This document shows, piece by piece, positions 4,501-64,000 of a stretch of 64,000 nt of DNA; position 1 is the first letter of the stretch, and each line of letters starts with the position of its first letter. Under the pieces are notes generated by a model. That model worked only from the letters and a program-made list of their open reading frames with translations. It searched no databases and had not been told where the DNA came from. Position numbers and translations under genes: made by a program. The DNA comes from Hyphochytrium catenoides. Its lineage: Eukaryota > Protista > Hyphochytriomycota. Location of the stretch: positions 1-64,000 of the forward strand of contig FLMG01001356.1 in NCBI GenBank assembly GCA_900088475.1. The letters are read 5' to 3'.

Positions 4501-5710
4501 TAGTCTCTCTTTCCATTTATTTGCCTCTTTTGGGTGCAGTTGGCTCTGTATTTGTAGCTATTTTGAAGCGGGACATCTGTCTCCTGGCCCTGAGAGCTTG
4601 TTACTTTACCCGTGAACCTTGCCATAAAAGATGACTCCTGGTCATGAAATATTCTTCGTACTACCTATTGGCTAACTGACGGAACCAGGTCGTGGATTCT
4701 CTTCCTATCAAGGGGATTGGAAGCTTGACCTCATGGACGGCCATGGACGCTTGCAGTGGGAGGATGGCACAGAATATGAGGGACAATTCCTGAGAGGTAC
4801 CGCGGCAGTCCCACTCTGGCTTTTGCTTTCTCCATCAAATGACCTCTCCTATTATTCGGTCTCCCTCCACTGAAGCCGCTGGCCCTTCTCCCATAAGCTA
4901 AAATAGATTCTCTTTCTGTCTCTTCAAGTTTCTGTCAGCCGTACTTCTTATTATCACACTGCGCCTCCTACCATTCTGTTATCTCATGTGCAATTTGCGA
5001 TACTCACCCCTTACAACGGTTAAGGGAAAAAGCATGGTTTGGGGAAAGAGATTCTGGTTCCTAGGCGTGACAGACCAAGGGACCTTGAGATTAAGGATAG
5101 GTTTCCTTTGGGAGGGGTCGATGGACTGTACCGGTACTACAAATACGAGGGAGAATATCGAGAGGGTGAGAGAGAAGGAAGAGGAAGCGTCTATTATTGC
5201 AACGGGGACTGTGTTATCGGACTCTTCCAAGGCGGAAGGCTTGAAGGAGAAGCTAGGTATATCTTTGCCTCCACAGGGCGGTCGCGCCACGGTAAGCTCC
5301 AGATGTTCTGCAATTCTTGCTACCTTCATGTACCGCAATCTCAGGGATATGATCTGAGTTTGACATTTCTCGCCTTGGCAGTTGCTTGCCGGCCTCTGCC
5401 TGCCTTTTGAGTTGCCGCGACCTCTTCTAGTCCCCGCTGCTCGAGCGCCACCGCGACGGAACCTCAACACTCGCTTCTTCCCATTCTGGCTTTGCTAAAG
5501 GGCTAAGTTGTTATATAGGTATCTGGCTCAGAGGAAAGCGTCTGAAGTGGCTGGACAGCAGGGAGGAAGAGGAGAGACAAGCGAAGCTCCTTAAGGAAGA
5601 GAACGTTGGGCAGGTTACAGGGACTTTCCTCAATGTGCTTAAGGGTGAAGAGATACCGAGCGAGTCGCTTCGAAGGCAAAGAATGAGTTTTAGTGCCGTC
5701 GTCCTCGCTT
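1501..5710 (+). CDS. MORN-repeat protein, about 14 exons
   Basis: Spliced exons give many MORN units (YSNGDEYIGEWLNNKRCGRGTYIY, GDIYEGEF, GSKYEGQWEQDQMHGEG, GNYYEGEWQDGDMHGQG) with phase-consistent GT-AG introns; ends ...SFSAVVLA-TAG 5710. Start at 1501, or at 1408 if the TAA at 1462 is a lesion. Confidence 0.9.
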
Positions 5711-5802: not shown

Positions 5803-8800
5803 CTATGATTCCAATGGGTCATCAGTCCTCGACTTCTTCATTGGTCTCGACTCGCTCAGATCAATGCCTTCAGGTAGGTCATGCCTTCGCGGTTGACCTC
5901 CATTATCCCACGTAGGAATGGTGGCAGGCTCGGAGTGGTTTCTAGACTCCGCATGGAACACTGAGGGCAGGCCAGCTAGCTTCTCTGAGAAGAGTTTTCG
6001 GTGACCGGCAACATTCAAAGAAGTCAAACAGGGGTCTGACAGGGCTTCCCGGGCAGAAATCCTGCAGAATGAGTTACCCGGGGGAGAAAGAGATTAGGCC
6101 TACCTTACACATTTACATCATGGCGCAAAAGAAGCTGCACATCGTGCCATCACATGCAAAAGATAGAAAATTCTCGCTAGGACAATGAAAGCAAGCAGCC
6201 TCTTGAATGGCTCCTGAAGGCGGCTGAGCAGAGAAACAGTGGAAGCCCGAGTGCACAGGAGGAGAGCAAGTAAGAGAGACAGAGAGACCGTCTGTTGGAC
6301 GAGAGGGAGGAGCTACCTCTTTGAAGGGTCCAGCTGCAGAAAGTTGCTAAGAAGCTCCAGGCACTCTAGATCTATCTCAGGAGCTTTCTCTAGTATTCGC
6401 TTGGAAAAGTTGGAAGAGTATTTCTGGGATGGTGCTAACTTACCATACAGTGGCAGACTTGTGCCTTTGGGCCATCTACATGTGCAACGAGAAGCAAAAG
6501 CAACATTGGTTTGCCATACAATGGAAAGAACGCAGGGTCTCAGGTTTAGAACTTGTTTTGTCGGTACCCTAGGGAGTACCAACGCTGATCAATGGTGGGC
6601 ACTTTGAAGCTCGTGCTTTCAGAACCACGAGTTCCTTCAGTCAACAAATACTCCGTAGCATCGCACTTACAGCTTGGCTGATGGGCTGCCACAGATTCTA
6701 AAGATATGATCCAGCTGTGAGCGCGGGTCCCTAGCTCTGAAGAGAGGCTTGCCAAGAAGAAGATACGCAAACAAGCAACCCACTTGCCAGAGATCGTTTT
6801 CAGGGACCGCATCACGCAACTACATCATATATAAAGTAATGCATGGGTGTGACAGGAGAGGGCCCAAGCCAGCAAGCATATTAGCCAGGAAGATGGAAGG
6901 GACACAACCCACACAGCAACAACACGAGTCAGCAGCTAGAGAAGACTAGTCCAGCCTGGGACAAAGGAGTGGGACCTTTGATAAAAATATAAATAACGGA
7001 AGGAGCAAAGCGACTGAATTGCCTTACCCCTAGCAAGACTTCTGGAGGCACTGTAGTCAAGCTGCCGGAGGCAGCGAGCTTGCTAAGCTCTGCCTGAGAA
7101 AAGGAACCATCCGGCTTCTTACTGTACTCTTCTATCACTTTGTTATACGAGCCCAGCGACGCCTTTGATCGCTCAAACCCACCCAGAATGGTGAAACCTT
7201 GCCGAGCCAGGAACACTGAAGAGGGATACCGTCAGAGGAAGGAAATGCGACAGTCATGCGCTGAAACGGAGCTACTCAACTGGCACACGGTCGGGACTGA
7301 AATGACAAAAGGAAAGGAAAGTCGTGGTAGGGGGTGCGGACAAGCGAAATAAAGGCAACAGTACTGGCGGATCACAGCGGAGATCTCGTTACAGTCAGAG
7401 TCACGAGGACGCACTGAAACCAGGAGCGAAGCTGAGAAAGAGTGCGTCCAGCAGGGGAGGAATGGATCAAGGCTACATGGCAGAATACCTTTCGAGGTCT
7501 TGATGTTCCTATGGACTATTTGCCTAGAGTGCGCGGCTCTTACCGCCTGCAACACGTCGTAAACGATCAGCTTGGCATCCTCTACCGAGAGCTTTAACGG
7601 GCTCGTCAGCACCGCAGCCAGATCGTAAGCAGGGGCTTTGAAGACTAGGTAGCCATCCAGAGAGAGTGGAGCTCGACTAGTGCTGTTTGCGGAAGAAGAG
7701 GAAGGAATGCTTAAAGGTTGCGCCTTGAGGAACTCCTTCTGAATGACAACGCCCAGGAGCTCAGGCGTGAAGGAACTTGCTGGTCCGCTTTGCATCTGCT
7801 GCACCGATGCAAGTTCCTAGCAGGTCAGATAGACCGGAGAAACTGGTAAGGATAGCGCCTACCATGTATGACAATCTAACAGGCTCACTCTTACGTATAC
7901 ATACGCCTACTACATCTTGACCTTGCATAACAGGAAATATGGGGTGTCGCGATTGCGAAAGGTTGTCTTACCTGTAACGCCGTAGAAGAGAGCCCAGCTT
8001 CGCCCCTGGTACCCTCTTTCTGAGGCCACCGCTGCAAAAGCACACCTTCGCCCTCTTGGAGCTTGATGTTCAAGCTTACACTATCTCCTAAGAAACTTCC
8101 AGNNNNNNNNNNNNNNNNNNNNNNNNNNNNNNNNNNNNNNNNNNNNNNNNNCTTCTTCAATCAACTATTTTACCAAGACGAAAACAAGAAAAGCTGCAAG
8201 CATACATGGACTTTGACTGTTCTTGATGCTGCTGCCCGTCCCAATTGTTGGTGGATCAGGTAGAGGTGTTCCGAGCCAACTCTGCTTCCGACAAATAAGG
8301 CCCGCAAAATAGTGGATTCATTGATTATGTGACACGGTAGAACCAGGTAGCAGGAGAAAGGTAAAGGGTTTACTTCACTTGATGAAAGGGTCAAATGCGC
8401 AATCAAGACACGAGTAGGTGCACCAACCTCAACAATCCTCTGCAGCTCGCTACCATCCACCTTAGATTCCAAGCTAGTACCCCGCTTGTCTTGGTCCCTT
8501 AGGACCATCTTCCAAGCCTGGACACATTCCTTATCTTTTTCTGCGCTCAACTCGAGCCAGTAGGGTCGCGAAGGGCTATCGTTCGCGAGAGTTGTGCAAT
8601 ACGCAGCTGAGGCTATGAGAAGACATGCTAGAACGTTTGCGTCGGGAGGGAACAGGAGCCAAATGGGAGTCGTGGTCGATTCTTGGATGATGCGACGTGA
8701 TTCTTTTGTAACTGAATTTGGTGTCTGTGGTTGAAGGAGAAAAGGGTGAGAACAGTACTTAAAAAGGATCGCTGCAGGTGTTGTTGACAGAGTGCAGCGA

Positions 8801-11800
8801 GAACAATTGATGATGATGGTCAGGTATGAAGAGATAAGACGTGAAAGTCGGTGGTCTAGTCGCATGGGGAATTTGATAAAAGAGTCAGGAAAACTCAGAT
8901 GGTCACTTACAGTAGGATGCTGCGAGACGTAAGTGGATAAGAGATCAAAAGGATCCTCAAAATGAAGGTCAAAGCCAATCTGGAGACACAGTGCCTCTTC
9001 TGCGGAGCACACCTAGAAAAGCAGGTCAATAATTAGAAGCTATCTAGAACACCTAGAAAAGCAGGTCAATAATTAGAAGCTATCTAACTCTGTCTACCAC
9101 CGACTTTGCTTTTGATGTCCTAATAAACGCCTCATTTCTGGTCCCCTCTGGACTGAATCCCCCTCAGTCTGATCTTCTTAGTCCTTGTTGGTGACAGTCA
9201 CTGAAGCGGCTCAACAGCCTCAGCAAATCGGTCCTCTTTCACGTTCGGTTTTCTTTAGCGAGAGTCTAGTACCTGTTCCTCCCAGAGGTCACGCTGTTGG
9301 GCTTCCAAGAGTACCGACGCAACGTTGCTTCCCTGACTTGTTGTCGAAGAGTTTTGCGGTGTAGATAGCAAAGTCTTCACCTCCTTTTTCTTTCCCTTGA
9401 AGAGACTAGTTGTTAGAAGCACCAATAGACCAGCTACTGTCGTCGATTGGAACTGACTTCGGCCGTCTAGGCATCCTTCAATCTACACCGACCACCATCT
9501 GCAACCCACGTCCAACCCATCCCAGTTGGTGACGAGTAGAAACATACCTTGAGTTTGAGACAGATCGTCACCGAAGCCGCAGCAAAGGCCGGGAGGGTGG
9601 CTTCGACCACTGGCGCCAAGGCCCAGTTCCGCATAAGATAGAACATAGCTTGAGCACAAATGCTGCGATCCAGCTTCAGCTTGCTCGCAATCTAAACCAT
9701 AGTAGAACCTTTAGCACTCACGTAGCCTCATCACCTTCAAAAGACATGACTGCAAGAGAAAACAGCTCTAGTCTTTGACAGATAGAGTGATTCCAAGTTT
9801 AAGATACCGCAGTCAGGCGTTAGAGCACAATAAGTAAAAGCTTTGGACCTGCTTTACGGTCTTCAGAGCCCTCTTGAGAGGCGGACATTCACTTGACGAC
9901 GATGACATCGTCCGCATCAGAGGGCACCCAGCCATCTCTTCAACGGTGAAAATCCAAGAACCTATTGAACCAGTCACATGCTGCCTTCTCAGAACTGACG
10001 GCGCGAAGAGCGATGGTTAGCAAAAGTGACTAAGTGAACAAGGGCGTAGGACAAAGGGCTTTAAGAAAGGGTTACGCAATCACACTCTGGTGCGATACAG
10101 CATGACAATAAGACATAGCAAGATAAGGGGAAAGTAAAGGATACTCCTGGAAAGAACAAGATAAACGGAAACAAGAAGTACTACTAGAAGGAGATCGGTG
10201 CAAACTCTGAATGTGGAACTTGAACGGTTACTAGAGTGCTTTCAAGGCTGTGAATTGGAACACCTAAGACGGCCATCAGCGATAAATTGTAGACATACCT
10301 GGTACCTCTTGAGCTATCGCAACCTGTTGAGGGTCTGTAGCGTTGGGAGAAGCCTTAGGACTTGGCGGCGGGGGAGAGTTTGCAGGTGGTGTGCTTGCAT
10401 CCTCTTCCACACCCGCAATTTCCTCACTAGAGATGAGTTCGTCCATCGTTGTAAAATGAACTTTGATGTTGCGAGTGTGAAGCCGGCGGAAGTTAAGTGT
10501 GGACCGAACTCGATCTGGACCGCGGACGGACAAAGAAGAGAACTTAGCCAAAGCTAAAGAACGGGGGGTGAACGATACGATGAGTCTCCATGGTATACGA
10601 GACAGGAAAAAAAGGAAGCCGCAAGGGAAAGGAACATTGGCTGTTGTTTTAGAGGGCGCCACAGCGATGGACCCAGCAGCTAGGTAAATACAGACTATGC
10701 CTTCTTACCGGCCCCTTCAATGGTGGAAAAGGACATATAACCTCTACGGTCCTTGGTATCCTCCACTATGAAACACTTCTCGACATAGCCTAACCTACAT
10801 GAGGTATGAGTGCTTTTGGCACAGGCCTGCAGCGATGCCGAAGGAAGCACAAATCGGGCCGAAGAAGAGAGAAAGAAGGCGTATAATATAGACAGATCGG
10901 AATAACTCTGGAGCGTAAGGGTTGAGGGGAACGGAAAATTCCCGCATCAGTGAAGCGCAGAAAGTCCTATTGTATAGGCATTGGAAAAGCTAAAGAGGCT
11001 CACCTTATTACGAGATCTCTTAAATTTCTGGAGGTGACCGTGGGTGCTAGGTTGGTCACCTTCAGATATCGAGACTTCTGCTGAGCTTCTGATAGAGAGT
11101 TTCGCCGGTGAGTAGCTGGGCGAGGATTTTGGAAGAGAGGGGCAGCAGAGGAGGAAGGTATCACAGGAGTTTCTGCCTTTCTAAGGCGTCCCCAAACTTC
11201 CTCTGGGTCGTACTCCTTCTCAAGCCAGGACTGCTGAGTCGCCGCAGGCGCAAGCTAGAAGTGATTGATGTTAGTATAAATGGGGTCGATGTACGAGATA
11301 AAGAGTTTCCCGGTTACACGGCGCGACAGGATGTCTGAAGAAAGAGCCAGTCTATTTAGAACTGGTCGAGACCGCTACATACCTTAGGTATGGCAAATGT
11401 GTGGGAATCGACGGAATCCCCTTCCTTTCGTTCATGAAAGAGATGCCACACCTCGTTCGCCAATACTTCTTCTGTGGGCTTTTCCTCGACGCCTCCGTTG
11501 ACATCAGCGTACAAAAGCTGATGTTTACCGCTCTCCGGGTCAAAGCTACTCGAGATGTCAAGTGAGCGAGGGTGAAGCTACCCTTCTCTAGTAAGGAAGA
11601 GAGCCTAACCAACCTCAACACTTTGGCCTCATAATATGTTCTGTCCTCGGGCCAGAGAACGCGGATGAACCTGTTGACCAACGCTGGTCCTTCTTCATCT
11701 TCTCTGGGTCGTCTCCATACTCCTTCCAGATCACTTGTAAGGTTGGTCGCCATAGTATCATCATTGCTGGGATCCTGTCAGAGTCGTAGACGTCAGATAG

Positions 11801-13091
11801 AACTCCAAGGTGCGAGATCTCATTTTAAGGTTTTCGGCTCACATTCTCGCTCCCAAGGAATGACCGGCAACTAGGAGCTCCACAGTGACAACTGCAATGG
11901 ACGTGGCAGAGCGTACACACCGTTGGAGATGGCACACAGCGGAAGCAAAAGCGAACGTGAAAAATTGTTACCGTATCTTCTTGCCGCCGATCCTTTGCCA
12001 GTTGTAGTCAAAGGTTAGCTCCTCTCCCTCTTGGATGTCCCGATCGGCTATTATGGCAATTCTTGTTTTGCCCTGCACCGACCTACAACGTTCTGTCAGG
12101 CTTCTTTGTTTTGTAAGTAGGGTGTATGTCTCTCAAAAACCAAGTGAACGGTGCTATAGGACCGGGGAGTCAAAAATGACTGATTGGCAGTGATGCACTG
12201 ACCACTTTTCGGTTTTGCAGTTTGGGTCACAACTATGGTTGAGGAAGCGCGATAGATTTCCCTTTCTTCTCGCATCAATGTAGACGCCAGGCTGAAGCAT
12301 GAGAAAGTAGAAGTTGATATCTCCCTGAGAAAAGGAAAACAGAAGGGTGTAAGGGCCGATAAGGGAAGGTTACCAGCTGAGGCTAAATACTAGATATAGA
12401 TGACAAGAAGACAGGTGAACCCCTGGACCTGTTGCTGCCGCAACCGACGAACGAACTCCTTTTCGTCGATGACTTCTCCAATGTACTCCATAATCAGTCG
12501 ACCTTCTTCTATCTTATGGCCAGCTTTGACGCCAAGCCCCTTGTGGTCCGTCTGTGACGCATGGGACAGTATGGAAGCTTGTGTAAGGGCAATGACGGCA
12601 TTTGAACGCGCAAACACTCTCTCCTTCCGATGCTTACCCTGAAAGGTACAAGTTCACAATAGTCCTTCTTCTGTAGCCTCTGGTTTCTACAGAAGGGTCC
12701 ACAGCGACATTGTCCTGGGCAACAGGAAGACAAGGATTGGCGAGCCGAGGGGGAATATGTCCCCGGTCCAGAAAGTTCAATCGCAGTCGTCATTTGAGCA
12801 TCTGCACGGTTTCCTACCTGAGATGCATTCGACGAAAGTCGCATAATTCAGACAAGAAACATCGTTGCACCGGACGAGGACATCTTTGTCTTGGGAGGTC
12901 ACAGAGGCAGCCACTTCTGCCCTCGTTGGCGGAGTACACTCGCACACTCCGCCCAGCTCATCTTCAGAGCTCTTGGAGAGTTTGCATAAGTATTCAGACT
13001 CCGTGATAAGCTTGAACCCGGCCTCCTCTTCAATGTTGATAACAGGAGGTGCCTGTTGGGCCTCCAGCGTTACCGTGCCATTCTCACCCAT
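5803..13091 (-). CDS. Multidomain fusion: AWS-SET-postSET histone lysine methyltransferase + Tudor + RRM + cyclin (N and C boxes) + CDK-like pseudokinase
   Basis: Exons on minus strand: 13091-12818, 12714-12638, 12551-12429, 12324-12203, 12082-11972, 11891-11843, 11774-11614, 11545-11383, 11254-11004, 10794-10709, 10553-10299, 9994-9849, 9691-9548, 9395-9273, 9012-8911, 8724-8428, [uncertain exon + N gap], ~8102-7972, 7816-7489, 7215-7028, 6819-6671, 6475-6317, 6061-5803. Motifs: CRNQRLQK; IMEYIGEVID; RFLNHSCDPNC; GEELTFDYNW; CHCGAPSCRSFLG; IRVLWPEDRTYYEA..FDPESGKHQLLY; LKVTNLAP..RGYMSF; SWIFTVEEM; EEALCLQIGFDLHFEDPF; GLSSTALQE; HRNIK; PPEVLLG; DLWQVGCLFA; LQLDPSKRISAREAL. Confidence 0.8.
8103..8151. 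other. Assembly gap (N run) inside the cyclin-to-kinase junction
   Basis: Run of n characters; true length unknown. Confidence 0.99.
9009..9086. repeat. 40-bp tandem duplication of an intron 3' end (branch point + acceptor)
   Basis: acacctagaaaagcaggtcaataattagaagctatcta occurs twice with period 40. Confidence 0.95.
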
Positions 13092-14290: not shown

Positions 14291-16062
14291 CTAGGTCTTG
14301 AAAGCCTCCTCGCGGTTACGCTTTCGCCTATTACTCAGTACCAACCTATCACTGTAGCTCTGTGCAATCTCTAGGGCATCCACTTCCTGGTCTTCTATAA
14401 CTTTGTCTGTGCTGTCATCCTCGCCTCCTTTAGAACTGGAGCTAAACTTTAGTGTGCAGTTATATCCGCGGAGACGGAAAGTCTGTTTATCCACCTGGTT
14501 GGCGAAGAAGAAGCTTGAAGGTAGACTAGAAAGGCTGACTTGAAGCCCTGGTTTCTTGTCATCCTTGTCACATACTGCTTCAACAGTGACCTCTATAGCG
14601 GGGCCCATCTCTGATTGTCGAACTAACGACTTCTCAGTAACTGTCTTCGGTGTCAGACTATAAACTCCGCCAAACTCTTTTTCAAGCCCCTCCAACGTTG
14701 TGGCGCTCGCCGTCTGGTCGAACCCCTTGAGTCCTTGCGCAAACTCAAATATTCTGAAAAGAAAGGGTATGCTTGGGCAATAGCTATCTGCAACTGGCTG
14801 ATCAACGGACTGGCAGCAAAATAGTCACCGTTGGTCATCACACAGAGCCCCACTCCGGTAGTCATTTCCATACCAAACCAGCTGGTAAAGCCCTCGTTGG
14901 CCCCAGAGTGCGAGAGTGCCAAATGACCCGTCTCTCGGTTGCGCTCAACGTTAAAGCCAAGACCATAGCCAGAAGAGGGGTCAGGGCTCGGGAAGTGCAG
15001 CGTGACCAACTCTTTTGCCAAACCTTCAGTCAAGAAGCTCGTAGTCCAGGATGCGTCACGAGGGAACCTAAGACTCACTTTTTCGTCTCCAGCCTCCGGA
15101 ATCCTACTTCCGCTTTCTTGCTCTTTGCCTTTAAGGGAATTTTGCAGAGCGCCTTGGATCGCCATGAGCACCTTACAGAGGTCAGACGGGGTAGTCCAGA
15201 GTCCGGCTGCCGCGCTCTCAGGATAGAGATAGTAAGGGCTCGCTCCACTGACAGGCTTAGGGCCTCCCACGTGTCCCGCTGACACGTCTTCACGTTGCGG
15301 CCTAAGCTCAAACGTGCTTTGCCCCATGGCCAGAGGCTCGAAGACTAGCTCCTTCATGAGGACGGAGAACGGCTTTCCCGCCACGTCTTCCATGATCTTC
15401 TGTAGGACTACGTACCCTCCTCCAGAGTAGATATAGGAGATGGTGGGAATATAGGTGAGGGCCACCTTTTCCGAATTCGCCGCACCGGTGCCGGTCAGGA
15501 TATCTCCAAGCGACGGCAAGACTTGCTTTTCTCCTTGGTCTTGATAGCCGCCAAAGCCATGGGTTGAGAGGCCGGCGCGGTGAGAAAGGAGCTGTCGTAG
15601 TGTTATGGCTGGCTTATCGTCAGGTACACGCCAGTCCGTGCGGAGGTAGGTGTTTATGTTCTCATCTAGATCTAGAAAACCTGCCTGCACCATTCTGAGG
15701 CACCCTACAGCGGCTACAGGCTTCGATAAAGAAGCGGCTTGAAAGCGAGTAGACACTTGCATTGGCTGCCGCGTAGACGAGTTCCGAAGGCCGTAGCACA
15801 GGGGGAGGACCTCGCCCTGATGGGCTGATGCTACAGCGATGGAGACTCCTGGGACGTTAAGAGCACTAAGGGCTTCTGAGGTTAGCGATTTCCCGTCTAA
15901 TAGAGCTGTTTGGAGGAGCTTCTGAGCCAGTTCTCTTGCTCGGGTTTCCATGGCAATGCTAAGGCCGTTATCACTACGGCGGGGAACCTCGTGAAATCCA
16001 GGACCCGCAGTAGAGGCCACGGAGGTAGACAATGCTGCCGCAGTTGTAGTTTTAATTGTCAT
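14291..16062 (-). CDS. Intronless serine hydrolase of the beta-lactamase class C/AmpC-like family, with C-terminal extension in the -1 frame
   Basis: NVPGVSIAV, FQAASLSK (SxxK), LRQLLSHRAGL, YIYSGGGY (YxN position = YSG), AAAGLWTTPSDL, SHSGANEGF. Frame 0 stops at 14653; an overlapping -1 frame ORF continues (LEKEFGGVY...) to TAG 14291. Confidence 0.85.
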
Positions 16063-19932: not shown

Positions 19933-21711
19933 TCAGGCAGACTTTAGCGATCGCCTCTTAGCGGAAGAAATGAGGAACAGGAGAACTATGGAGAGAGCAG
20001 ACAATCCCATCTCTATACAGGTGAAGATCGGGAAGATCGGTCCCGTAATGTTTCTGTGTACAGCAATATTGATTACGCTGGGGACATGTTACAAGACGAA
20101 GACGAAATATGCTTCTTACCCGCTTGCCAGAAGCGCCACACACGACCCGAAGACTGCAATTTGACGCCAGAGCTCGATGGTGACCATATGCGGCATATTA
20201 CGTAGCATGGACGCTGCGAACGAATCAGGAAAACGCAACAGCTGAGTTCAGTACTAACAATGTCCATGTTTCAGTGAGAAAAGGCCTTGATTGCTAGGCT
20301 GCTACCTTGGCACCAGCTTGAAAAGATTACTGAAAAGAGAAGTGCCAAGTAAACTCTGTCATTTAGACGCTTGGAGAAAAGCAAGAGCAAGAGCGCTCCG
20401 ACGTTAATTGTGGCAAAGTTTAGCCAATGGTAGACTAAAGCAGCCCAGGTGCTGTTGATCACTCCTCGAAGTCGAGTCGCCGTGCTGGGATCCGGTAAGC
20501 TCTTTCTCCTAGCCATGGCAGGACGATATCCAGGTCCGACGAAAAATGTCCTTGCTCGTTGCCCCCACTGCTCAATAGCAACATTTGCTTATGACACAAA
20601 TGAATGGCAAAAGCCAGAAACGATAGAACTTACTGTCGGTGCCAATAAGATACGCTGCCAGATGCTCCAAAACAGGTTAATTTGCACCCAGATTGGGTCT
20701 ATAGAGTCAATATCCCTAAGGACCCTAAAGCGCCATGAAAGGGATCATAATGTGACGGCCGGTGGATCAAAGCAGTGGTGGATAGATAACCTACCCATAG
20801 ACGACATTTTCATCCCCCTTGGCTTCTGATTCTGTGAGAATGCCGGCGTAACTATAGAAAAAGCCCTTACCGGGCCGAAATCCTTCTCCCTCGTCCATAA
20901 AGCTGCCAAACAAGCGGTCCCAGATGATAAGGACACCTCCATAGTTTTTGTGCACCCTGCGGTCATGATGGACGCGGTGATGAGAAGGTGTGCATACCAG
21001 CCACTCCAAGATCCCAAGCCTGCGCACGGTCGTCGTGTGAACCCAGAACTGGAAGAGGGTATTCAGTTGACCCTGAAACGCGAAGAACTCGTATGGGAAG
21101 ACCAAGGCTAGGGGCATGTAGACCAACTGCGAGAAGAGCCCCTGGAACATGGACTGGCGGAGCGCTGTGGTGAGGTTGTACCGGTCGGAGGAATGGTGTG
21201 TGCTGTGCGATGCCCACGCGATGTTGACTTCATGTGCCAGTCTATGAAACCAATAATAGCCAAAATCAACCGCTAAGAAGCTCAGTATCCACTCCACCGT
21301 GGAGTTCATAGGAAACAGAGGTAAAGGTGATGCCTTCTGAACCCACTGATATAAGGAGAAGGTGAAGAACCGAAAGTAGAATGTGTACGCCAGCTGCTGC
21401 ATCATTCCCGATGTGATGGAGCAGATGCTGTCAGCCAGGTTATATTGGCCTGCAGCAGGAGTGGCACCCCAACCAACCACAAACTCCACGAGCATCAGCA
21501 GGAAAAAGAACGGAACCGCAGCATTAATGTACTCTGATAAAGATTGCACATATTAGACTTCGTTCAGAACGAGCAAGGGTCACGAACAAAATAGTACTCA
21601 CGCCCTCTTAGGTAGTCTTTCCCAATAAAAAAGGTGGCGATGGAAGACAAGACCACCGCAGCGAGGTAAATGCATACTTTCACAGGTGATGCTCCCACGG
21701 GTCTGACGCAG
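19933..21711 (-). CDS. AGMO: Alkylglycerol monooxygenase (fatty-acid hydroxylase superfamily); 5' end uncertain
   Basis: YYWFHRLAHEVN.WASHSTHHSS.YNLTTALRQS, YQFWxH-like FQFWVH, PSHHRVHH..KNYGGVLIIWDRLFGSF; spliced downstream exons give VVYGVLRDIDSIDPIWVQ and FVGPGY, typical of AGMO; TGA at 19933. Confidence 0.88.
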
Positions 21712-49930: not shown

Positions 49931-50749
49931 TCAATGCAGGCCTTGCAAAATTGGGGTCGCAGAAACTCCTTTTAAGCAGCTCTCTCCAGAAGACCTTCGA
50001 TTGATGTCAGAAGCTATTTCTTCTGCAGCCTCTTCAGCTAGAAGATAAGACTCAGCCAAGACTTCCTCTCTGGTTCGGTTGGCAGTGTTTGACATCAGAA
50101 CGAGCTTCAGATGATTAAATCCCACAACACCAAAAATATCAGTCAAGTACGGCACCATGTGATCTCGGCTTGGCCGCCGACCGGATCCTCCTGCACCAAG
50201 CACGAGGACTAATGGCTTTCCTGCATCTCCTAAAGGTTGGATACCATCGTCGCTGTCCTTGATAGTGAGGCCCGGCTGTATAACACAGTCTATGTACTGC
50301 TTGAGGACATACGGACAGGAAAAGTTCCAAATAGGTGATGCCACAAGCAGCACGTCGGCAGTTAGAAGCTGGCTCGCCATCCGCTGGACAGGCTGAAGGT
50401 TATCCTCGTCAGATGGAAGCCCTTTCCCAGCTAACCGTCTCATCTGACTGCCAACATGACTTAGGTTGAATTGCAGCAACTGTTCGTCCCAGAGATCTAC
50501 CTCGTCGACAGCGCAATTTGCTCTCCGAGATAAGAAAGAGTCAATAAATCGTTGAGCAGTAAGAGCTGTCAGAGATTGGGGTCCCGATGACGCATTAAGG
50601 TACAGGATTGATGAATGGCTGGATGGACTTGATGGGTTCGATGTTGACGCAGAAAGTGTCCTCCTTTGTCCTCTAGCAGCGTCCTGCATAATGTGACCTC
50701 GGCGGGAAGTGAGGTCATGGCAGCGGGGTCCTAGAAGTAATCGCTTCAT
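49931..50749 (-). CDS. azoR: FMN-dependent NADH:quinone oxidoreductase/azoreductase (AzoR/AcpD, Flavodoxin_2), intronless, with putative mitochondrial presequence
   Basis: ILYLNASSG..SLT, ADVLLVASPIWNFSCPYVLKQYIDCVIQPGLT; Arg-rich N-terminal extension ending RRTLS. Confidence 0.85.
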   Translation of the reverse strand: MKRLLLGPRCHDLTSRRGHIMQDAARGQRRTLSASTSNPSSPSSHSSILYLNASSGPQSLTALTAQRFIDSFLSRRANCAVDEVDLWDEQLLQFNLSHVGSQMRRLAGKGLPSDEDNLQPVQRMASQLLTADVLLVASPIWNFSCPYVLKQYIDCVIQPGLTIKDSDDGIQPLGDAGKPLVLVLGAGGSGRRPSRDHMVPYLTDIFGVVGFNHLKLVLMSNTANRTREEVLAESYLLAEEAAEEIASDINRRSSGESCLKGVSATPILQGLH

Positions 50750-62376: not shown

Positions 62377-64000
62377 TCAGCTCGAACCTGCTCCCTGCTG
62401 ATTTTTATAAGAATAAAGAACGGAAAANNNNNNNNNNNNNNNNNNNNNNNNNNNNNNNNNNNNNNNNNNNNNNNNNNNNNNNNNNNNNNCCACGGAGGAG
62501 TGAGATATTCCATGATCCGCGGATACTGTCATCTGCAGAAGATAACATGCAGTACCATTCCAATAGATTGAATCAATCGCACCAAATGTTCCGGAGAGAG
62601 GCCGACAATAAAGCATTGTATCTGTGCCAAAGTCTGGAATATCTGAGAGCTTTTTGAACCGAACGAGGTCAGGATGTCCACGCACCTCAAGTGTAAACTC
62701 ATTGCTGGATACCGAATTCAGATGCTGTCCAACTAGGGATCTTGGTTCACTGGATACCATAAGAAACCACCGATGACAGAGCAACTCGTAGATGATATCG
62801 CACACAGCACTCGTATCACGATCGGCGGCCTTCGTTATGGCAAATTCTGAAACTTTGTCATAGCATTCATTTACAAGTCGATCCGTAACACGCTGCGCAA
62901 TGTGTGCAGATGCGAAATTCAAGATGAATCTTCCATACGGACCAGCTTCACTTTGCATGTCAGGAACCATGTGGAGGATATAGTGACTATAACTTTCCTC
63001 TGACATTGGTTTTCTGTTATTGACATAGTTGAGAATATGCAAAGAATTTGCCCTTTGGATTGCTTCCAACACCTTTTGCTTGTACGGGACGCGCTCCTTT
63101 TCAAAGCAGAACCGCGGTATTCCTCCAAAGAACTGGAACGCTTCCACAAGTTTATCAGAATCCACAGGTGATGTATCCTTAGCGTTGGCGATCTGGAGTT
63201 CGTCTAGGGTCCATGGCGGCATGAAGTACTCTCGGGGGCTAACCTTAAAGTATTGATTGTAACCCTTGACACCAGGTGATGCAAATAATATCGAAAGGCC
63301 ATTCCAGCCTGTAAGGTGACTGGATTGTGCATCAATCAAGCGTAGAACATTACTACGTGACTGATAGTCTGGTACTTCTTCTGCTGGGAGTACACTAAAG
63401 TAGTCACCACCGCCTTCTCCTTGTCGACGTTGATGGACGTGGTAGACGTTAGCATGATTGATCACAAGAACGCGATCCTCCACAGGGTTCTCCGTAACGA
63501 TGCGATGGATGCAATACAAGTAGAACCTGCTCTTGCCAATACCAGGATTTCCAGTGACCGTGAGGTTCATATTGCTGTAAGACTTAATGTTTGCAATGAG
63601 CCGATCAAAGATTTCCTCATAGCAAGAGCGAACAAATATCGTCTTGTGGAGGATGTCCGGATGCATTAGAGGAGGGAAATCCACCATCCTGATAAACTTG
63701 AATGTCACTTCCAACTCCTCCTCGCGACCACCATCTTCATCATCGTCAATCTTGACCTTTTTCGTCATGAGATCATAATCCCGACGAAACCAATCATCGA
63801 ACTTTCGCTTCTTTAGGCTCCTACTAGGAATCTCGTTAATTGCATAGAGCCTTTTGCGAACAGTGGCCGCAGATGATAATACGGCGGAGCGACTTATTGA
63901 AAGTTGCACCAGAATTTGTTGTTTCAAATGGATTAGACCATCAATTCTCGCAATGGTGTCGGGAGGTGCGGAAGAAGGAAGGGATCTTCGCTCATTCTGC
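62377..64000 (-). CDS. Crinkler/RHS-type protein: P-loop NTPase + PD-(D/E)xK-like endonuclease; intronless, 5' end beyond window, 3' end across an N gap
   Basis: IFVRSCYEEI, LTVTGNPGIGKSRFYLY (Walker A), ILFASP, YFMPPWTLDEL, FGGIPR, YCRPLSGTFGAIDS..LLQMTVSADH; frame open to the window edge. Confidence 0.88.
   Translation of the reverse strand, partial: QNERRSLPSSAPPDTIARIDGLIHLKQQILVQLSISRSAVLSSAATVRKRLYAINEIPSRSLKKRKFDDWFRRDYDLMTKKVKIDDDEDGGREEELEVTFKFIRMVDFPPLMHPDILHKTIFVRSCYEEIFDRLIANIKSYSNMNLTVTGNPGIGKSRFYLYCIHRIVTENPVEDRVLVINHANVYHVHQRRQGEGGGDYFSVLPAEEVPDYQSRSNVLRLIDAQSSHLTGWNGLSILFASPGVKGYNQYFKVSPREYFMPPWTLDELQIANAKDTSPVDSDKLVEAFQFFGGIPRFCFEKERVPYKQKVLEAIQRANSLHILNYVNNRKPMSEESYSHYILHMVPDMQSEAGPYGRFILNFASAHIAQRVTDRLVNECYDKVSEFAITKAADRDTSAVCDIIYELLCHRWFLMVSSEPRSLVGQHLNSVSSNEFTLEVRGHPDLVRFKKLSDIPDFGTDTMLYCRPLSGTFGAIDSIYWNGTACYLLQMTVSADHGISHSSVXXXXXXXXXXXXXXXXXXXXXFSVLYSYKNQQGAGSS

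Follow-up and report, generated by a model that had tools for sequence, protein, structure and literature searches.

The stretch of DNA analysed here (the window) comprises positions 1 to 64,000 of Hyphochytrium catenoides contig FLMG01001356.1. On its minus strand, from 13091 down to 5803, lies a series of at least 22 exons and at least 21 introns that together specify about 1,280 codons. In the order of translation, these exons read as an AWS/SET/post-SET methyltransferase, Tudor-like and RRM-like stretches, a divergent cyclin and a CDK12-like kinase domain (Table 1). An earlier reading made from the letters of the window (the sequence-only reading) had assigned all of these parts to a single gene. 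Following up this reading, we consider it likely that the locus is one gene, orthologous to PITG_14137 of Phytophthora infestans, whose product joins a SET enzyme to Tudor-like and RRM-like parts, a cyclin and a dead CDK12-like kinase, and that the cyclin-pseudokinase pair has a docking or regulatory function. The gene model was derived from the DNA sequence alone. Searches of Pfam, PDB, the ESM Atlas and sequence libraries were made with separate exon pieces, and the protein collections searched contain no proteins of this genome.

An independent rebuild from the raw frames, checked by script, returned the 16 exons of 13091-8428 as a single open frame of 2487 nt. Every intron was GT-AG, the 829 codons contained no stop and the frame ended in phase 0, which bears out the 16-exon chain of the sequence-only reading. 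The motifs named in that reading (RFLNHSCDPN, ELTFDYNW, CHCGAPSC, SWIFTVEEM and EEALCLQIGFDL) were all found in the sequence, and an in-frame stop precedes the ATG of exon 1. Since an open frame is partly a by-product of the way in which the chain was chosen, validation of the model rests on the continuity of domains across the junctions.

At the start of exon 15, a perfect 40-nt duplication (Tandem Repeats Finder: period 40, 2.0 copies, 100% match) has doubled the 3' splice site. The frame remains open only with the downstream acceptor; use of the upstream copy would give GTG TTC TAG. Contigs of DNA reads break at this duplication and the read depth rises there. A 15-nt micro-exon (SCLLK) between exons 12 and 13 was also considered and was dropped, as the direct join already gives the usual cyclin spacing.

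Table 1. Parts of the methyltransferase-cyclin-pseudokinase gene model and the features that interrupt it (window positions; exons in order of translation)
Feature	Position	Strand	Content
Exon 1	13091-12818	-	start codon 13091-13089, ~45 N-terminal residues, first half of the AWS zinc cluster (CEC...RCNDVSCLNYATFVEC)
Exons 2-6	12714-12638, 12551-12429, 12324-12203, 12082-11972, 11891-11843	-	second half of AWS, SET, post-SET
Exons 7-8	11774-11614, 11548-11383	-	Tudor-like stretch (ALVNRFIRVLWPEDRTYYEAKVL / SFDPESGKHQLLYADV...FAIPK)
Exons 9-11	11254-11004, 10794-10709, 10553-10299	-	RRM-like stretch (YLKVTNL ... RGYMSF ... IKVHF), then Pro/Ser-rich linker
Intron 11	10298-9995	-	304 nt; joint between methyltransferase half and cyclin
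Exons 12-16	9994-9849, 9691-9548, 9395-9273, 9012-8911, 8724-8428	-	predicted divergent two-box transcriptional cyclin (C/K/L/T type)
Tandem duplication	9009-9086		3' end of intron 14 and first 4 nt of exon 15
Putative intron 16	8427-8165	-	donor GAG/GTTGGT at 8428/8427; candidate acceptor ...cgtcttggtaaaatAG at 8166-8165
Assembly gap	8103-8151		written as 49 N, true length 141 nt
First visible kinase exon	8102-7972 (codons from 8100)	-	degenerate glycine loop FLGDSVS, beta-3 GVLLQRW, start of helix GLSSTALQ/ELASVQQM
Kinase exons	7816-7489, 7215-7028, 6819-6671, 6475-6317, 6061-5806; stop 5805-5803	-	HRN, LGGF, PPEVLLG, CDK12-like CMGC insert, LQLDPSKRISAREAL

The N-terminal part of the chain is a lysine methyltransferase of the SET2/ASH1/NSD (KMT3) class. 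Pfam recognized SET on three consecutive exons (7.5e-3, 2.1e-9 and 3.3e-7), which cover profile positions 1-36, 37-85 and 74-105, and AWS on the exon-2 piece (1.2e-3; profile positions 19-39 of 39). The AWS score is under the curated cut-off because just half of the domain lies in exon 2; the first half is readable in exon 1. Both catalytic motifs of SET (NHSCDPN and ELTFDY) are intact, and the post-SET cysteines follow in the next exon. This AWS-SET-postSET core, with its NHSC and ELxFDY motifs, is that of Set2/SETD2 (KMT3), and a co-transcriptional role is presumed here as well. In Set2/SETD2 proper, SRI is the C-terminal domain that binds the phosphorylated C-terminal domain (CTD) of RNA polymerase II (Pol II). 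Scans of the separate exon pieces at E values up to 10 gave no SRI or WW domain; the C-terminal half here consists instead of the Tudor-like, RRM-like, cyclin and pseudokinase parts. The SET domain is presumably the sole enzyme activity of the chain and would act on lysine 36 of histone H3 (H3K36). A metagenome scan with the SET piece returned four loci, which were ordinary SET2-like genes with no kinase or cyclin downstream.

The Tudor domain of the sequence-only reading has weak support. Pfam was silent on the pieces of exons 7 and 8, the second of which gave only a spurious repeat match. PDB returned a single match, the 66-aa chain 7de9_A, which we take to be the Tudor domain of Arabidopsis RDM15/PDS5C. 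This match was weak (E 0.37), extended over the first two strands and was aligned on GESLVGSRIKVWWPMDQAYYKG. For the RRM-like stretch, which is split over exons 9-11, neither Pfam nor PDB gave a match on the pieces, and the domain is read from its motifs alone. A second copy of the 5' half of the gene (described below) provided a comparison for this region. In the Tudor-RRM part, the two copies differ at 24 of 557 nt in introns (4.3%) and at 12 of 739 nt in exons (1.6%), a 2.7-fold difference (Fisher p 0.006); six of the exon differences are synonymous and six conservative. Denser differences in introns, together with the synonymous half of those in exons, support the exon model of the Tudor-RRM part.

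Exons 12-16 read as a very divergent cyclin of the transcriptional type. Using exon 16 as query, 15 of 17 PDB matches, the best among them, were to cyclins L2, L1 and C at their second box (E 0.04-0.4). In the ESM Atlas the same exon fell with cyclin C-terminal clusters (0.96) and the best ten family matches were all cyclin, while Pfam gave Cyclin_C_2 at 0.016, under its cut-off. An AlphaFold2 single-sequence model of exon 16 alone was too poor for use (predicted local distance difference test score 46). For the first box, the ESM Atlas placed exon 13 with Cyclin_N clusters at 0.87, which we regard as a lead only; Pfam and PDB gave nothing on the pieces of 34-48 residues, and the patterns W-x-F-T-x-EE and E-x-LL-x-L-x-F-x-L were read by eye. 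Of the two cyclin boxes proposed initially, the second is supported by PDB and Atlas matches and the first is retained as a lead. An exhaustive search of 1.84 billion cluster representatives with the cyclin piece yielded as its sole match a bacterial repeat protein with 23 short matching stretches, which is spurious, and a metagenome scan with the cyclin exon yielded nothing.

A kinase domain downstream on the same strand was confirmed. Six GT-AG exons, read from 8100, contain 403 open codons before the stop, and two of them were recognized by Pfam as Pkinase (7.9e-5 and 9.6e-4). The C-lobe exon matched CMGC kinases in PDB (GSK3, MAPK and CDK chains) at 1.6e-8, and the exon with the CMGC insert matched CDK12 only (6 of 6 matches, all weak). 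The N-lobe exon (8102-7972) and the activation-segment exon gave no kinase match in PDB, and a word-indexed homologue search with the kinase piece returned nothing. The first kinase exon has the composition of an exon (pyrimidine fraction 0.42), and a manual alignment matches it with PITG_14137 (PVYLQSWP, GLNDACLRELSAATTL) and with the CRK7-class kinase PITG_02446 (GEVVAIKKI, GLPVTTIREIKVL). The PITALRE-like helix is kept (SSTALQE) and runs on without interruption across the 7972/7816 junction, which validates that splice; GLSSTALQELASVQQM was aligned by eye with GLPVTTIREIKVLKCL of PITG_02446.

The catalytic residues, in contrast, are gone. Gln replaces the beta-3 catalytic Lys, the glycine loop is degenerate, HRD has become HRN (the PDB alignment sets HRN on HRD), the Asn of the catalytic loop is a Lys (KTSK), and GGF takes the place of DFG. 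The top cluster for the central kinase piece in the ESM Atlas consisted of tribbles-like pseudokinase fragments. We therefore read the domain as a CDK12/13 (CRK7)-like pseudokinase that lacks every residue needed for phosphotransfer and retains the cyclin-binding helix and the substrate-side C-lobe. An active single-chain cyclin-CDK, phosphorylating the Pol II CTD and thereby recruiting or activating its own SET domain, would fit the domain order, the CDK12-like C-lobe and the PITALRE-like helix. However, with the beta-3 Lys, the HRD Asp, the catalytic-loop Asn and the DFG Asp all lost, the chain cannot be a CTD kinase, and the authors who described the Phytophthora orthologue scored it as inactive; we regard an active enzyme as highly improbable. 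The sequence-only reading had suggested that CTD phosphorylation and H3K36 methylation are hard-wired into one chain. The phosphorylation falls with the lost residues, whereas the wording of a cyclin-CDK scaffold stands, as does the lack of an SRI match on the pieces.

A related fusion has been described in oomycetes. PITG_14137 of P. infestans joins an N-terminal histone-lysine methyltransferase to an inactive kinase, and both P. sojae and P. ramorum have orthologues (Judelson & Ah-Fong 2010, BMC Genomics 11:700, PMC3019232). Table S1 of that study gives a length of 1501 aa, a Pfam SET domain, a kinase domain at 981-1341 and a catalytic-domain quality of 'bad'; the best match is CHED (CDK13) and the closest family CMGC/CDK/CRK7 (PMC3019232). 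We compared the gene by eye with the printed first ~400 residues and the kinase domain of PITG_14137. The two proteins agree in N-terminal length and have in common the AWS sequence RC(N/D)DVSCLN(Y/F)AT(F/Y)VEC and the motif CRNQRLQ; a hand count over SET core and post-SET gives 58 identities in 91 residues (~64%). The Tudor-like part is colinear, with ALV-x-R-x-(I/V)RV and FAIPK in common (ALVGRRVRVF...FAIPK in PITG_14137), and lies ~580 residues from the kinase in PITG_14137 and ~530 residues from it here. In the kinase, (L/Y)LQ(R/S)WP, GL-x-x-(T/A)-x-L-(Q/R)-EL, PEVLLG, LPLY and LQLDP(S/A)KR are common to both. Both proteins have LGGF where DFG would be expected and Gln at the position of the beta-3 Lys, and at HR(N/F)I the reading is HRN here and HRF there.

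Orthology is the simplest reading of these shared idiosyncratic losses. The gene is most likely an orthologue of the PITG_14137 fusion of SET with an inactive CDK, an architecture that was published in 2010 and is functionally uncharacterised. The claim of the sequence-only reading that the architecture had not been characterised thus holds for function, the function of both proteins being unstudied, but not for the fusion of SET and inactive CDK as such. The two proteins are similar in size (1501 aa for PITG_14137 against ~1,280 aa), and at least 21 introns were counted in the present gene. For PITG_14137 the paper lists SET as the only accessory domain and gives no cyclin, Tudor or RRM. The cyclin between the SET half and the kinase is a new element relative to the published fusion.

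Two joints connect the domains into one chain: intron 11, and the passage from exon 16 across the assembly gap into the kinase. The donor of intron 11 (CAG/GTATGT) scores 9.7 with a leave-one-out position weight matrix (PWM), one of the highest values in the gene. In its pyrimidine fraction (0.65, against 0.47-0.55 in its flanks) and its T-A skew (0.34), this intron resembles the validated introns, and its length is comparable to those of introns that interrupt the cyclin (260 nt) and the kinase (273 nt). In exon 12, the conserved W-x-F-T-x-EE motif of the cyclin precedes the first Met.

At the second joint, the exon-16 donor has the same sequence as the validated one of exon 7, and with a PWM score of 6.5 it ranks in the top tenth of all GT sites; the candidate acceptor scores 1.2, inside the range of real acceptors. 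If intron 16 is left unspliced, the cyclin frame runs into TAA at 8172-8170. The candidate exon at 8281-8186 that had been proposed for this passage was not borne out: its donor is poor (PWM -2.6, 24th percentile of all GT sites), and the exon is also unneeded. A larger gap hiding a gene had been named beforehand as a finding that would speak against a single gene. Contigs of three DNA runs (X1, X2 and X3, the last with a 35-letter side) join 8102 to 8152 with 141 letters between, 92 nt more than the N written. A gap of only 141 nt leaves no room for a hidden gene, and this objection is ruled out. From the acceptor at 8165/8164 (...cgtcttggtaaaatAG/TTG) to the first kinase codon at 8100, the distance is 156 nt with the 141-nt gap, which is in frame, and 64 nt with the 49 N, which is out of frame. 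The first kinase exon lacks a Met, its frame is open to the gap edge and the kinase domain is cut there, indicating that the coding sequence extends into the gap; we predict a stop-free passage through its 141 letters. A separate start of the kinase, if there is one, would lie at most ~160 nt past the stop of the unspliced cyclin frame.

We infer from these data that introns 11 and 16 are spliced and that all parts lie on one chain. A single gene is very probable in our judgement, in agreement with the sequence-only reading, and is supported by the presence of SET and a CDK-like domain on one chain in PITG_14137, by the splice signals, by the intron-like composition of intron 11 and by the true length of the gap.

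The DNA reads also revealed a second version of part of the gene. From 10405 upward (seen over 10394-11700 and probably extending further 5'), read contigs are 1.6-3% off the window sequence and deeper than on the cyclin-kinase side, and a window-exact contig of 132 nt has half the base depth. One variant contig departs from the window at 10394, inside exon 11, and continues with at least 255 unlike letters, suggesting that a second copy of the 5' half has another continuation. Either a structural allele or a recent partial duplicate could account for this copy. In all three runs, a contig of 1378 nt (9057-10434) supports the join as it stands in the window. The variant continuation from 10394 was searched for in the window and was absent, and no large repeat of the gene was found within the window.

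Several observations weigh against the reading of the locus as one gene orthologous to PITG_14137 with a docking cyclin-pseudokinase pair. The variant contig parts from the window within the methyltransferase half. Two short ATG-started mini-exons in intron 11 are phase-compatible with exon 12, although their donors are weak (near 0, the median of GT sites). The predicted open passage through the gap is demanding, as a random stretch of 47 codons is stop-free in just about one case in ten. The Tudor-like and RRM-like assignments are weak, the latter being without a database match on its pieces. The by-eye comparison with PITG_14137 covers its first ~400 residues and its kinase domain. A homologue of the cyclin went undetected in a library that likely includes Phytophthora proteins, and a cyclin in the ~580 residues between those two parts of PITG_14137 can therefore not be claimed. 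Finally, the docking function is purely something that we infer.

Part of this evidence would suit two or three neighbouring genes on the same strand (SET-Tudor-RRM, cyclin and pseudokinase), the long chain being an artefact of picking phase-compatible GT and AG sites. The unspliced frame stops 6 codons past exon 11 (10278-10276) and again past exon 16, the two mini-exons (at 10276 and 10116) offer starts in phase with exon 12, an ATG at 7795 could begin a truncated pseudokinase, and no domain crosses either intron 11 or the joint between exon 16 and the kinase. However, the Phytophthora orthologue carries SET and kinase on one chain. Spacers between such genes would measure at most ~330 nt and ~160 nt, compared with ~1.2 kb for the only clear same-strand intergenic space nearby. 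Intron 11 differs from its flanks in composition, the alternative donors are at the median of all GT sites, the N-terminal motif of the cyclin and the N-lobe of the kinase lie upstream of any usable Met, and the true gap of 141 nt restores the frame. Separate genes are thus an unlikely explanation of the locus.

The fusion might also be real and its cyclin-pseudokinase tail a functionless relic of a captured CDK-cyclin pair in decay, which would make the protein a SET2-class methyltransferase with readers. All catalytic residues are lost, the N-lobe and the activation segment went unrecognised in the PDB searches, the cyclin has diverged too far for a homologue to be found, and the second copy of the 5' half is apparently without the tail. 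In contrast, 11 exons of cyclin and kinase keep more than 650 codons open and the C-lobe motifs are well kept (1.6e-8). Moreover, the odd substitutions LGGF, LQ-x-WP and the STALQE/DACLRE helix are common to Phytophthora, which argues for long-term constraint on the non-catalytic form. A relic tail is, in our view, quite improbable.

The kinase resembles CDK9, CDK12 and CDK13 in its C-lobe, PPE-x-LLG motif, CMGC insert and PITALRE-like helix, and the cyclin is of the transcriptional type, as in the CDK12/CDK13-cyclin K and CDK9-cyclin T complexes. Here, however, the partners would share one chain in which the cyclin precedes the kinase, the catalytic residues of the kinase are lost, and the best matches of the cyclin, although weak, are to cyclin L and cyclin C rather than to cyclin K or T. 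Single-chain CDK-cyclin proteins have been reported in P. infestans: PITG_10829, PITG_10830, PITG_10831 and PITG_21617 were confirmed by reverse transcription PCR, all have HRN, and relatives occur in ciliates and Theileria (PMC3019232). Like the present protein, they carry a kinase and a cyclin on one polypeptide and read HRN. They differ from it in that the kinase comes first, is CDC2-class and keeps DFG and the beta-3 lysine; there is no methyltransferase, and they are not orthologous to this gene. In view of these four HRN proteins, the joining of a cyclin to a kinase whose catalytic loop is dead recurs in this part of the tree.

The methyltransferase half can be compared with PsKMT3 of P. 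sojae. In the study of that protein, no SRI domain was detected in the oomycete KMT3 proteins (Mol Plant Pathol 2023, PMC10013772), and a PsKMT3 knockout retains about half of H3K36me3, so that other KMT3 members contribute (PMC10013772). PsKMT3, an oomycete protein, is like the protein studied here in its KMT3-class AWS-SET core and in showing no SRI domain (here, on the exon pieces), but it belongs to another KMT3 clade, has a PHD finger and has no reported kinase or cyclin.

A possible mode of action can be proposed from this arrangement. The SET domain would methylate H3K36, and the cyclin and the pseudokinase would pair in cis as a silent look-alike of the CDK12-cyclin K complex. This pair would probably serve in docking or regulation, with the Pol II CTD or the elongation machinery as examples of its targets, in a lineage in which the KMT3 enzymes are without SRI. 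In its most specific form, the proposal is that the cyclin and the dead CDK12-like domain fold together, bind the Pol II CTD or a substrate or partner of a CTD kinase without modifying it, and so recruit an H3K36 methyltransferase in stramenopiles, the KMT3 enzymes of which are without SRI. We regard this version as possible but doubtful. If it is true, a pair of pseudo-enzymes has replaced the reader of the phosphorylated CTD.

The fusion of SET with an inactive CDK, so far reported only for three Phytophthora species, very probably also occurs in a distinct, intron-rich genome. The intron number together with the ~64% identity of the SET core suggests a distant relative rather than another Phytophthora. 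Its presence in such a distant genome suggests that the architecture is old and maintained and not an accident of annotation. The cyclin between the two halves leads to a testable idea, namely that a methyltransferase carries its own silent cyclin-CDK pair. As no SRI domain was detected in the oomycete KMT3 proteins of the P. sojae study (PMC10013772), the protein is a candidate for coupling H3K36 methylation to transcription in these organisms. It would also offer a natural case in which a pseudokinase and its cyclin have been retained side by side.

Several other genes were noted in the window. Just upstream of the gene studied, a single open reading frame (ORF) of 469 codons on the minus strand (14653-16062) encodes a serine hydrolase of the beta-lactamase family. 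Its best matches are all bacterial (~38% identity), making it a candidate for horizontal acquisition. At the other end, a MORN-repeat gene on the plus strand (~4700-5410) faces the pseudokinase tail to tail; the two coding ends are only ~300-400 nt apart, suggesting short 3' untranslated regions there. Farther along, the minus strand carries an exon for alkylglycerol monooxygenase (AGMO; fatty acid hydroxylase family) at 20791-21549, with best matches in animals and ~48% identity to animal AGMO. A 516-codon ORF at 62377-63927, also on the minus strand, contains the P-loop GNPGIGKS, is broken by an N gap and matched no Pfam family. On the same strand, a 272-codon ORF at 49931-50749 encodes a domain of flavodoxin-like fold of the NAD(P)H-dependent FMN reductase type (Pfam 1e-28).

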